Source: Pocillopora damicornis (Eukaryota). From it: a stretch of DNA of 64,000 nt. The stretch lies in NCBI RefSeq assembly GCF_003704095.1, contig NW_020843834.1, forward strand, positions 868,001 to 932,000, read 5' to 3'. Under the pieces are notes generated by a model that saw only the letters and a list, made by a program, of their open reading frames with translations, did no database searches and was not told the DNA's origin. Made by a program: the position numbers and the translations under genes. The first letter of the stretch is position 1, and each line of letters begins with the position of its first letter. Positions 34,180 to 46,547 of the stretch are shown in pieces.

Positions 34180-35531
34180 CTATACCTCCTCACCAGTGAT
34201 TATTCTTAGAAACTTTTCATCATATAGGTCACTAAGCTGTTTGAAAAACTTCTCGCCAGTTAGATGACGTGGTGGGTTCCCCTCTATAGCCCTCTTAATG
34301 CGCACAAGATCGTCACTGAATCTCTGACATAACTCTTTAATTTGGACCTTTATCGGTTGCAATCTTTCACGAAGCTTACGCAGTCTATCCACGTTACCCT
34401 CAACTAGTCTTTTAACCATCGTGAACTGGTTTTCGCTCAGAATAATATGGATATATAGACGCAATTCATGTAGAAATTTCATTAAAATCGTTTCATCGCT
34501 ATCACTGTCGCTGATCTGCTCGAACGATTCAGCTGGCAGTTCTTCCAGTTTTTCTCTAAAGATTCTGGCACAGTGAGCCTCAAGTTCTTTACATTCTAGA
34601 TCCTCGTGTAGTTGTATGAGAAACTTGAGATTCTCGTGCCTGTTTTGACGTGCATGATCATTGTTTTATTAAGCCAAAATTTTCTGCACTCGCTATAATC
34701 TTTCATGTCTATGCCCATCTGTGGGAAATCGTTTCGGAACTCCTTACTATTGGGACCACCAAACTGTAAGCTGTTTACGTACGGAGCAATAGCTTCAGTT
34801 CGCTCATCAAGCTCTTTCACGCTTCTTTGAGCATGTTCAGTCACTGCATTTGATGATCTGTTACTGCCAAAATATTTCAGACATTTCAAAGCGACCCTTT
34901 GTTGTTCACCTGTAAGGAAAGGCTCTGCTAAATTCCCCAACTCTTCCACCACAAGTCTTAATTCTTCCTTTATATTTATTGGCACTTCTCCCAAGAGAAA
35001 CAACGAAGAGCAGATATTTAGCGGCAAGAAAATCATGTGGAGGTCTTCACGTAAGGCCTTCAACTGAGGTGACTCGCTCGCAAAATTGCGGTAGTTATCA
35101 TCGGTGAGCATGTATCGCAAAACATCAAGGCCAGTTACTGTAGAGTGGATTAGTATACGTTCAAAAGTGTTCTTTACCTTTGCAATTTTCTGAGGGATGT
35201 CTTTACTTTTCAGTTTGCTGTAATCGGTGTAAATTCTTTCCGCGAATTGGCGCCATTCTCGCCTCCGATGGTCTCTTCGGTCTTCTTGGTCACGTCTGTT
35301 TTGGTATTCCCGACCCTCCTGTAAGCGCCTCTCCTGGTCCCTTCGGTCTTCTTGATCACGTCTGTTTTGATATTCCTGACCCTCCTGTAAGCGCCTCTCC
35401 TGGTCCCTTCGATCTCTGTGCCAGATGTAAATGGTTCCAACTACAAAGACGACGATGGTAAGAAGAAGATTACCGCAAAAGTAGACCAGGGTTATTGACT
35501 CCTTGTACTCTTTAACAAACCTATGAATCAT
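34180..35531 (-). pseudogene. family copy A: TM + 4 hendecad repeats + conserved domain; one frameshift near 34665 (pseudogene or sequencing error)
   Basis: ATG at 35531. ORF 34596-35537 continues in a shifted frame as KFLIQLHEDLECKE...DSDETILMKFLHELRLYIH, which aligns with FSLRELHHILEVEE...KDSHKEVVAKVLHEIRYIH of copies C/D and runs to the stop at 34180. Confidence 0.75.
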
Positions 35532-36844
35532 GGTCAAACTTTCTTCACAAAAATCAAGCTCGATTTTCGTATTTACTGAGGAAGCTTGATATTTAATGTT
35601 TAGAGTGACGTCGAAAGAGTTTTGAGAGGCTCATTTTTTGCCGCGACCTTTCCGTAAAATGGCTTCGACGTTGAGGATTATTTCAAACTGCTGACGATCT
35701 CTTCGCTTTNNNNNNNNNNNNNNNNNNNNNNNNNNNNNNNNNNNNNNNNNNNNNNNNNNNNNNNNNNNNNNNNNNNNNNNNNNNNNNNNNNNNNNNNNNN
35801 NNNNNNNNNATTATACGGTTTGTGGTGGTCATTTGATCTAACCAGTTCCGAGTAAGGAAACACCCATTAAAAATTGAACGTTTGCAGGTTTCAAATCATC
35901 AGATGCGTTGCCCACTCCCGAGGGACACTGTGAATTAACTTCTGTTCGAGCTCCAACAAAAACAAATAAAAGGAAATCTTCCCTGGAAGCTTACAAGAGA
36001 GACGTTCGACTGTGCACATCCGAAGAACACCATTTAGCTGATAAGTCAGCCTCTTCTCGAATTTGATAAAGGGTCAGTTAGCGGTGGAGATTAAACTCGT
36101 CTCACGCTTAGTTTAGCTTTCACACAATTTCTAGTCTCGGTACCAGTCTTTTTTTAAATTGGCTTGTTCCCATGGAGTAACAGAAGACTATCTTCTCATC
36201 ATGATCAATTCTCTCTGTATCAACTGTCTTTATCTTTTGATCCTGATAGAACGCAATGTTTTGTTACTTCAAGTTTATTCAGCGCGCTTTCCTGGGATTT
36301 CAAATAGGTAATCACCGCCTTTTTGTAATACTTTTTGAAGAGGGATGAAAGAGGATTCTAAGTTTACCATCATTTCTAACTCTGCGGATACTCAAGGCGT
36401 TTGCTGGCTCTTCGGATGAGAGTATTGTGATGATCAAAGTGAGAGGAAAACGCTAAAAAAGGCCGAAAACTTGAAGTTTGAGATTTGATTTATTGATTTA
36501 TTTATTAAGATGTTAATATCTTACTTCTATGAATCATGAAGTTGAATGTGGAGACGATTGTGAGACAATAAGGTTTTCTTTAAAAGTTTTGTCCACATTT
36601 CAGTGGGAAAGAACATGAGGAGTGATCAGGTGAAACATTGTCATGTTCCTTAAGAGTGTCTGAGTTTCCAGGATAAGAGCTGTAAAATTTCTTAAGTGAC
36701 TGATGTACGATTTGTCTGCCATAAAATTGGCACAGCCAAAGCCTTGGCTGAAAAACTAAAAATTTCTTCATATACGGAGCCAAGCCAAGATTTTACGCCA
36801 ATATGTTGGTCGGTTAACTATAATAAATTAATATATAATTAAAC

Positions 36845-45203: not shown

Positions 45204-46547
45204 TTAATGCCAGTAACTTCCATATCCATATAGTAGCTTGGTAGAATTCCTTAACGAGCTTTTTAACGGTAGTGACTTAATTACTTCCTCAAAAAGCTGA
45301 TCTAGTATACTCACAATTTTTCCGTCAATCTTTGGTGACTCTAGTTTGCTCTGAAGATAATGGATATAACGTATCTCATGCAGCACCTTTGCAACAACTT
45401 CTTTATGGCTATCCTTGCTGACAATTGGGTCAGTCAAGTTTAGAGGTGACTTTACTTGTTGCACTTTAAACTCTTCGATACAAGTTTGATAAGTCGTATA
45501 TTCTTCCCTTTCTAGAATGTGATGGAGATGCCTGAGGGAATGTTTCTCGTCAAACCCCATCATTGTTAATGAAAAATTGGTACACTGGATGTAATCTTTT
45601 TCATCAATTGGTTCTATTGGTAGTAAAACAGATTGGTTTGGCATCCGACGAGGAATATGAACTAACTTCAGGCTATTTACATATGGAACAATATCTTCAA
45701 GTGGCTTATCAGGCACTTTTCTTTCAGGACCTGCATATGGTTTGCCCCCACCAAAATGTTTGAGGCATGTCAAAGCGATCTCTAGTTTATCACCTGTTAA
45801 GAAAGGCTTTGCTGCATTCCCCAATTCTTCCACTACACCTCTTATTTCTACCTTCGTATTTTTGGGCACTTCTCCTAAATTGATCAACGAAAAGCAGGAA
45901 CTTAGCGGCAGGTAGATCCTGTGGAGGTCTTCACGAAGGGCCCTCAGCTGGGGTGATTCGCTCGAAACATTTTGGTAGTGATCATCAGCGAGACAGTATC
46001 TCAAAACATCAAGGCCAGTTACTCCAGAATGAATTGGCAATTTGTCAAAAGTTTTCTTTACCTTTAATATGTTTTCTAGGATCTGGTTTCGTTTCAGACA
46101 GCTGTGATCTGTGAAAATTATTTCCGTGAACTGACGCCATTCTCGCCTCTGATGGTCTCTTCGCTCTTCTTTGTCATGTCTGTCTTGGCGTTCCTGGTCC
46201 TCTTGTTTCTGTCTGTCTTGGCGTTCCCGATTCTCCTGTTCGCGTCTCTCTTGGTATTCCCGATTCTCCTGTTCACGTCTCTTCTGGCGTTCCCCATCCT
46301 CCTTTGCACGCCTCTCCTGGTATTCCCTTTCCTCCTTTGCAAGCCTCTCCTGGTGTTTCCTATCCTTCTCTGCACGCCTCTCCTGGTGTTCCCTATCCTC
46401 CTTTGCACGCCTCTCCTGGTCCCTTCGATCTCTGTACCATAAGTAAATGGTTCCAGCTGCAAAGCCGAGGATTGTAAGAAAGGTATTAATACAATAGTAG
46501 GCCAGGGTTATTGATTCCTTGTACTCTTTAGCAAATGTCTGACCCAT
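45204..46547 (-). CDS. family copy D: uncharacterised single-TM protein with 8 hendecad charged repeats
   Basis: Intact intronless ORF, ATG at 46547. Close paralogue of copy C in inverted orientation, with a 17-aa C-terminal extension. Confidence 0.85.
   Translation of the reverse strand: MGQTFAKEYKESITLAYYCINTFLTILGFAAGTIYLWYRDRRDQERRAKEDREHQERRAEKDRKHQERLAKEEREYQERRAKEDGERQKRREQENREYQERREQENRERQDRQKQEDQERQDRHDKEERRDHQRREWRQFTEIIFTDHSCLKRNQILENILKVKKTFDKLPIHSGVTGLDVLRYCLADDHYQNVSSESPQLRALREDLHRIYLPLSSCFSLINLGEVPKNTKVEIRGVVEELGNAAKPFLTGDKLEIALTCLKHFGGGKPYAGPERKVPDKPLEDIVPYVNSLKLVHIPRRMPNQSVLLPIEPIDEKDYIQCTNFSLTMMGFDEKHSLRHLHHILEREEYTTYQTCIEEFKVQQVKSPLNLTDPIVSKDSHKEVVAKVLHEIRYIHYLQSKLESPKIDGKIVSILDQLFEEVIKSLPLKSSLRNSTKLLYGYGSYWH

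Follow-up and report, generated by a model that had tools for sequence, protein, structure and literature searches.

Four paralogous open reading frames (ORFs), here named A to D, lie at positions 34180-46547 of a 64,000-nucleotide stretch of the coral Pocillopora damicornis (contig NW_020843834.1, positions 868,001 to 932,000; the whole stretch is called the window, and all positions are given in it). They follow one plan, i.e. a ∼11-residue N-terminal tail, a single hydrophobic segment, a juxtamembrane stretch rich in Arg, a tract composed almost entirely of R, E, Q, D, K and N, and a domain opening with REWRxF, and they differ strikingly in the length of the charged tract. What kind of protein is this, and does the length of its charged stalk matter? 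The reading we favor, to which we give a probability of roughly 0.5, is that the cluster belongs to a coral-specific, single-exon orphan family of membrane-tethered cytosolic scaffolds or adaptors, in which the domain sits on an ER/K-type helical spacer of quantized and polymorphic length. The copies are as follows.

Copy A, 34180-35531, minus strand: N-terminal tail, transmembrane (TM) helix, 53-residue stalk (four hendecads plus nine residues), full-length domain ending in EEV.
Copy B, 38078-38531, plus strand: N-terminal tail, TM helix, 20-residue stalk (one hendecad plus nine residues), first 95 residues of the domain.
Copy C, 41016-42242, plus strand: 408 residues, with the TM helix at ∼41049-41126, a 75-residue stalk (six hendecads plus nine residues) and a tail-truncated domain.
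Copy D, 45204-46547, minus strand: 447 residues, with the TM helix at ∼46437-46514, a 97-residue stalk (eight hendecads plus nine residues) and a tail-truncated domain.

An earlier note on this DNA had described four copies with an N-terminal tail, a TM helix, an 11-residue repeat and a conserved domain, and all four were found where it had placed them. A six-frame search of the whole 234-Mb assembly returned these four places and no further copy.

Membrane segment, stalk and domain

Stalk length was measured from the Trp closing the hydrophobic helix to the REWR motif. By this measure, the stalks are 20 (B), 53 (A), 75 (C) and 97 (D) residues long, which corresponds to 9 + 11n with n = 1, 4, 6 and 8, the very repeat counts given in the earlier note. 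The repeat arrays reported by Tandem Repeats Finder are listed below.

A stalk repeat, 35269-35415, minus strand: 66-nt (22-residue) unit, 2.2 copies, 93% matches.
C stalk repeat, 41148-41323, plus strand: 33-nt unit, 5.3 copies, 86% matches.
D stalk repeat, 46174-46420, minus strand: 33-nt unit, 6.1-7.5 copies, 82-84% matches.

The unit reads, for example, R-R-E-Q-E-N-R-E-Y-Q-E, with a single Tyr as its sole apolar position. The charged fraction of the stalks is 0.64-0.71, and oppositely charged pairs spaced i/i+4 number 29 in the 75 residues of C and 38 in the 97 residues of D. Hydrophobic residues (L, I, V, M, F, W or A) number 0 in B, 1 in C, 2 in A and 5 in D; the stalk of B is too short to count in the composition test for single α-helices (SAH), which needs ∼30 residues. 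The composition of all four stalks revealed no hydrophobic a/d/h seam in the 11-residue unit. Because the i/i+4 charge pairs are dense and there is no such seam, an ER/K SAH fits these stalks, whereas a hendecad coiled coil does not; of the two helix models put forward in the earlier note, the sequence supports the former and not the latter. In an AlphaFold2 model of C built on a 40-sequence alignment (predicted local distance difference test score, pLDDT, of 83.8), one unbroken helix runs from residue 4 to residue 131, taking in the TM segment and the stalk as well as the first helix of the domain, and the pLDDT means of 10-residue blocks are 91-97 over residues 51-160. By signature and model, the stalk fits an ER/K SAH, which would be stiff and monomeric.

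This assignment draws on the composition test, and the coral helix is known here from sequence and model. Like the ER/K helices of myosin VI and X, caldesmon, MAP7, INCENP and synthetic linkers, the stalk combines high Glu with Arg/Lys, places opposite charges at i/i+4, lacks a hydrophobic seam and is predicted as a long uninterrupted helix, the length of which would set the distance and the effective concentration between its two ends. Unlike them, it is fused directly to a TM helix, is built of an exact 11-residue genetic repeat that forms an allelic and paralogous length series, and favors Arg over Lys, with Gln, Asn and Tyr in set positions.

In all four copies, the best 19-residue Kyte-Doolittle window (mean 1.6-2.5) falls at residues 12-31, and in every copy the next-best segment scores distinctly less (0.44-1.72). 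The 15 residues that follow the TM segment hold 3-4 Arg/Lys, against 0-3 in the N-terminal tail. One N-terminal hydrophobic segment with more Arg/Lys on its C-terminal side is the pattern of a type III (N-out, C-in) single-pass protein. Because these basic residues follow the TM segment and no signal peptide is found in the copies, the body of the protein is probably cytosolic. The C-termini of the ETxV type borne by many relatives complete the basis on which a cytosolic C terminus, already favored in the earlier note, appears likely. A Ser/Thr-x-hydrophobic C terminus is found in 51 of 151 near-full-length relatives, mostly of the ETxV type (ETKV, ETDV, ETIV, also SVV), after a tail rich in Ser, Asp, Glu and Asn. 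The ETxV ends have the pattern of class I PDZ ligands and may bind PDZ domains. In the cluster itself, the A type ends in GEEV, C in SLPL and D in SYWH, C and D being without the Ser/Thr-x-hydrophobic end.

The motifs REWRxF, VTGLDVLRY, SPQLxALREDLH, LGEVP and LHExR of the domain are kept in relatives, and the model of C shows an all-helical body with a small three-stranded sheet. Pfam and NCBIfam searches with the four products and 40 relatives returned nothing but sub-threshold compositional matches in the TM/charged region, and a profile search of PDB sequences returned designed helical proteins alone, at E > 0.01. Foldseek gave no match at E ≤ 0.001 against the PDB (both models) or against BFVD, with TM-scores ≤0.2, while the ESM Atlas gave either no usable match or scores of 0.83-0.84 to unrelated bacterial clusters, which lie within noise. 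Across the libraries searched (Pfam, NCBIfam, PDB sequences, Foldseek and viral collections), there was no confident match to a characterized family or to a transposon ORF, so that the family is as unrecognized as the earlier note had found it.

One candidate identity, the EP domain of plant EDS1/PAD4/SAG101 (PF18117), was considered and found no support in profile searches. It is absent among the Pfam hits up to E = 1 and in the 40 relatives, and a six-frame search of the coral's own genome with the EDS1_EP profile yielded nothing at the locus and one sub-threshold match on another contig. The fold likeness to the plant EP domain is within the noise quoted for helical models. In the window, 17-24 kb upstream of the cluster, an ORF with NB-ARC/nSTAND/NACHT and TPR features (10511-12253, minus strand) adjoins a class-3 lipase ORF (15617-17191, plus strand); at the other loci examined, no NB-ARC or lipase Pfam family was recorded among the genes around family copies. 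A distant analogy between the domain and the plant EP domain, with a link to the neighboring NB-ARC and lipase genes, is a low-probability lead.

Several better known proteins resemble parts of this architecture. In p180/RRBP1 and kinectin, which reside in the endoplasmic reticulum, an N-terminal anchor leads through a basic region into a rod, either helical or of tandem repeats, and a body in the cytosol, much as predicted for the coral proteins; in p180, the repeat number differs between isoforms. However, no sequence similarity to the coral copies was found, the decapeptide repeat is not a helical ER/K sequence, and these proteins are much larger and conserved across animals. In L-SIGN/DC-SIGN (23-residue neck repeats), the macroglycopeptide repeats of platelet GPIb-alpha and the fungal FLO/ALS adhesins, a membrane-adjacent coding repeat varies in copy number and alters the distance of a constant domain from the membrane. 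There, the stalk is extracellular, forms a tetrameric coiled coil or a mucin-like rod, and presents a lectin or adhesin, whereas the coral stalk is probably cytosolic, has the signature of a charged single helix and carries a domain matching no searched library. This second comparison is one of analogy, not homology.

Relatives and the stalk-length series

A word-index search retrieved 162 proteins; where a name is given, it is that of an "uncharacterized" protein of Pocillopora meandrina or P. verrucosa. An exhaustive profile search among 1.84 billion cluster representatives retrieved 59 clusters, none of which has a named non-coral member; among the more distant ones are "uncharacterized" proteins of Acropora palmata, A. 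digitifera, A. muricata, Montipora foliosa and M. capricornis. These distant relatives keep the TM helix with a YY motif, the charged juxtamembrane helix, and the motifs EWRKF, GLDVLRY, LLG-x-P, IPYV and LIHDVR. Acroporidae and Pocilloporidae stand on two deep branches of the stony corals, and the presence of the family in both indicates that it is old within Scleractinia. The most divergent member (P0160), used as a word-search query, matched itself alone. Scans of IMG/VR and of the viral structures in BFVD yielded no relative (Phrogs and padloc were not scanned), and literature searches, by Acropora accession number or on SAH repeat proteins anchored in membranes, turned up nothing relevant. 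Because both Acropora-type and Pocillopora-type members read as whole ORFs on genomic contigs, the absence of coding introns is a trait of the family.

In 98 of the 99 relatives in which both anchors could be located, the stalk is 9 + 11n residues long, so that length indeed changes in whole 11-residue units, as the earlier note had it. The range is 9-141 residues, which at the helical rise of 1.5 Å (0.15 nm) per residue, a textbook value, amounts to a calculated ∼1.4-21 nm. Several stalk lengths coexist within groups of proteins that are at least 85% identical over the first 140 residues of the domain. The 90% cluster around C, for instance, contains stalks of 75, 97, 108, 130 and 141 residues, several of them on multiple contigs, whereas all 17 members read in the D cluster have a 97-residue stalk. 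Different units have been expanded in different paralogues, i.e. 22 residues in the A type, 11 in the C/D type and others in the relatives P0071 and P0120.

Two side observations concern the surroundings of relatives. One relative of 588 residues (P0151) has a fragment of the family's C-terminal region fused to collagen-like repeats; downstream of the cluster in our window lie a collagen triple-helix ORF (54083-54553, minus strand) and a Pre-SET ORF (61569-62681, plus strand), and P0151 may be a gene-call chimera of similar neighbors in another genome. On a 558-kb contig (L010), a Mab-21 gene, with a cGAS-like nucleotidyltransferase fold, is found at 19407-20900, 8 kb from an Acropora/Montipora-type member, a single observation.

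Duplication, state of the copies, expression and selection

C and D form an inverted duplicate with arms of 726 nt that are 94% identical, and ∼680 nt of upstream non-coding sequence are common to B and C. Directly before the ATG, ∼30 nt are conserved in all four copies, and 3' flanks, too, are shared between copies. The upstream blocks are as follows.

Upstream region of C, 40615-41015, plus strand: common to 37398-38039 of B, 74-85% identical.
Upstream block of D, 46590-46666, minus strand: 97% identical to the block upstream of A (35633-35709).

Because non-coding DNA upstream of the genes is shared, the origin of the copies lies in duplication and inversion of DNA segments and not in independent retroposition events. 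The upstream region shared by C and B marks duplicated DNA that would include a leader or promoter.

Copies A and B are both interrupted. In A, 5 extra bases at ∼34648-34652 break the frame relative to intact 448-residue alleles (the reference used being the one on Tara Pacific metagenome scaffold L007). The annotation gives a product of 311 residues (34596-35531), and the remaining ∼140 codons continue in another frame to 34180. Products of 311 residues with the identical out-of-frame ending, differing at residue 6, are found on independent ENA contigs. This recurrence means that the frameshift is not merely an assembly slip, and in wild samples such products coexist with many intact 448-residue alleles. 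Copy A in this genome is therefore a natural, segregating frameshift allele. In B, an assembly gap (38532-38631) cuts the gene after codon 151. The 3' half of B is absent, in any frame, from the 1.6 kb past the gap, and from the whole window as searched by tblastn with full-length relatives. Given this gap and the lack of family-like sequence downstream, the copy was counted as incomplete; its cut end may be due either to a longer stretch missing from the assembly or to a genuine truncation. Other sequences contain full-length relatives of the B type, 349-475 residues long.

C and D are open ORFs shorter than the ancestral form, their tails having been cut by in-frame stops. Past the stop of C, the reading frame keeps a recognizable remnant of the A-/B-type tail, broken by a second stop, and tblastn alignments of full-length relatives extend to 42356-42359.

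Relic of the ancestral C-terminal tail of C, 42243-42359, plus strand: located behind two in-frame stops by translation and tblastn.

The exact product of D is found on 25 ENA contigs, and the 17 cluster members that were read are all 447 residues long. Thus, of the earlier description of four intronless ORFs, the absence of introns holds and is family-wide, whereas A is frameshifted, B is cut by a gap, and C and D are tail-truncated. Users of the reference gene models at this locus are thereby warned that these contain a frameshift allele, a copy cut by a gap and copies with shortened tails.

The gap in B is the sole one of four in the cluster that touches coding sequence. The other three are listed below.

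Assembly gap, 35710-35809: non-coding, 179 nt upstream of the ATG of A, abutting the upstream block shared by A and D.
Assembly gap, 36988-37396: intergenic.
Assembly gap, 43411-43510: non-coding, between C and D, abutting an inverted-repeat arm of the C/D 3' flanks.

A 58-nt tandem repeat (2.4 copies, 36849-36987) runs straight into the second of these gaps, and the inverted-repeat arms at 43274-43410 and 44943-45079 end exactly at the third; both gaps are probably caused by repeats. Directly downstream of C, at 42497-42680, there is a short interspersed element with a summed contig depth of 12,000-65,000 in all four sequencing runs, at which many contigs join or end. It looks like a very high-copy coral repeat resembling miniature inverted-repeat transposable elements or short interspersed nuclear elements.

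Transcription was assessed by placing RNA contigs on 40701-46700, which spans C and D. Libraries of polyA or oligo-dT RNA from at least four studies contain the sequence of C. In three runs of this type, the contigs are colinear with the genome over 40979-42496; they show 0-16 differences, have no joint within the coding sequence of C and break solely inside the repeat. As a control, the intergenic segment 43901-44500 is empty in these three RNA runs and covered in a run of unrecorded type, possibly DNA. For D, RNA contigs cover just 45701-45900 (in one run) and 45901-46631, the pieces listed differing at 10-14 positions, which is weak support for transcription of D. The unrecorded-type run (X15) covers C and intergenic DNA and has almost no contigs, at ≥90% likeness, over 45350-46547 in the coding sequence of D. 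In that individual, D may be absent or divergent, a case of copy-number variation, or there may be a hole in the assembly.

Pairwise dN/dS (the ratio of nonsynonymous to synonymous substitution rates, by the Nei-Gojobori method) was calculated over the domain, with the two in-frame parts of A joined without the 5 extra bases. The values are 0.71-0.98 for C or D against a wild C-type allele, 0.76-0.89 for B against C or D (95 codons) and 0.34-0.66 for older pairs. In a related coral, a 1.23-Mb long-read contig (L011) carries one intact B-type gene (10001-11380) and two broken copies within 21 kb, namely a family fragment at 1127-1536 and a copy split over several frames at 14105-15312, which are pseudogenized members of the same cluster. 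The rapid evolution claimed in the earlier note is borne out by the overall dN/dS range of 0.34-0.98 and by these broken copies. The cluster evolves by fast birth-and-death under weak constraint, and positive selection is possible.

Competing readings and what the family may mean

In the reading we favor, each gene would encode a single-pass protein with a ∼11-residue tail outside and its body in the cytosol. The TM helix would continue unbroken into a Glu/Arg-rich ER/K helix acting as a stiff spacer, the end of which would carry an all-helical domain of ∼300 residues with no detectable relatives. Members of the ancestral type would continue into a disordered acidic tail and an ETxV-type PDZ-binding motif. 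Slippage or unequal exchange within the coding repeat would change the spacer by whole steps of 11 residues (33 nt), and the protein would serve as a scaffold or adaptor tethered to the membrane, with a reach that varies from one paralogue or allele to another. Birth-and-death evolution would account for the frameshift allele of A, the gap-cut B, and the tail-truncated C and D with their very weak amino acid constraint. Within this reading, the cytosolic orientation, the stiffness of the spacer, PDZ binding and the adaptor role are what we infer.

A number of points count against it. No experiment or homology supplies a function. The topology is argued from the positive-inside rule and motifs alone, and C and D are without the ETxV tail. 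AlphaFold readily draws long helices for charged repeats, so the model cannot show stiffness. Outside Pocilloporidae, the stalk is 12-38 residues long, not visibly repetitive and not of the form 9 + 11n. Variant repeat numbers come mostly from short-read metagenome assemblies, which are prone to mis-assembly of repeats, although several of them recur on several contigs. Strand, transcript ends and expression level cannot be read from contigs of RNA libraries. A quantized length needs no selection for "tuning", because slippage of the 33-nt repeat is in itself enough to produce it. Finally, the C-D comparison looks nearly neutral, with a dN/dS of 0.95 (dS 0.077) and 86 differences spread 34/28/24 over the three codon positions.

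These last points also count for a serious, if less probable, alternative, in which the architecture is the same and stalk length varies neutrally, because the 33-nt repeat is prone to slippage and the lineage-specific cluster is weakly constrained and decaying, with no tuning of length and with C and D becoming pseudogenes. The loss of both tails to in-frame stops, the segregating frameshift allele of A and the broken copies in the related genome are as this alternative would have it. The contrast between a length-variable C-type cluster and 17 constant D-type members could likewise be explained by slippage rates, the repeat of C being purer (86% matches) than that of D (82-84%). It is opposed by the fact that C and D both keep frames of more than 400 codons, the chance of both staying open after 86 random changes being ∼0.02, as well as by the recurrence of the exact D product across contigs, the presence of C in polyA RNA libraries of several studies and the dN/dS of 0.34-0.5 between older paralogues. 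An immune or allorecognition locus of receptors or adaptors under diversifying selection, with stalk length as part of specificity, is in our view unlikely.

Parallel dimers or oligomers held by a near-straight hendecad coiled coil, in which 11-residue steps would preserve the register between TM segment and domain, are slightly less likely still. The strict 11-residue period is what such a coil would have, and the TM segment has conserved polar/aromatic residues (a nearly invariant Y17 and the YY motif) that could mediate helix-helix contacts. A two-copy complex prediction of C scored 0.00 (mark 0.32), which by the rule of the method is evidence neither way. Against the coiled coil stands the composition of the stalk, which has 0-5 hydrophobic residues (at most 5 in 97) and no a/d/h seam. 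The stalks of distant clades (12, 16, 20, 27, 34 and 38 residues) differ from 9 by approximately whole helical turns, a weak hint of a conserved helical phase; this idea was considered and dropped, as it comes down to merely two or three independent length classes.

The earlier note had also seen, in the lack of introns, a hint of retrocopies or of a viral or horizontal origin. This is now very improbable and already largely refuted, even though the coding regions are intronless, the RNA contigs of C are colinear with the genome, and a high-copy interspersed repeat lies directly downstream of C. The genome holds four copies alone, all in this cluster; up to ∼680 nt of upstream non-coding DNA and the 3' flanks were duplicated with the genes (poly-A tracts and target-site duplications were not searched for). 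The named relatives are all from corals, in two deeply separated families, with none in IMG/VR or BFVD, and no ORF of at least 100 residues for a transposase, integrase or reverse transcriptase is present in 33000-48000.

A bolder extension of the favored reading, which we regard as doubtful, is that selection, beyond slippage, has a hand in how many 11-residue units a rigid ER/K helix, continuous with the TM helix, contains, making the family a natural series of molecular rulers. If this were true, each unit would add ∼1.6 nm and turn the cytosolic domain by ∼20 degrees. The same domain, ancestrally together with a PDZ-scaffold contact, would be held at defined heights of 1-21 nm above the coral membrane, a principle so far known from engineered ER/K linkers alone. 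Length-variable repeat stalks are known already from other membrane proteins; what would be new here are the SAH nature of the stalk, its continuity with the TM helix and the unclassified domain.

If spacer length matters, the family would give the synthetic ER/K linkers that tune the rates of protein-protein encounter their first counterpart in nature, and it would also offer a convenient length-polymorphic marker for Pocillopora populations. If spacer length is irrelevant, the locus would still illustrate cleanly how birth-and-death evolution and repeat slippage shape a gene cluster restricted to one lineage. Stony corals have many "dark" genes that recur in studies of stress and symbiosis with no functional handle. 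For one such family, there is now a concrete and testable architecture: an anchor, a charged spacer of quantized length, a domain unmatched in the libraries and a PDZ-type tail.

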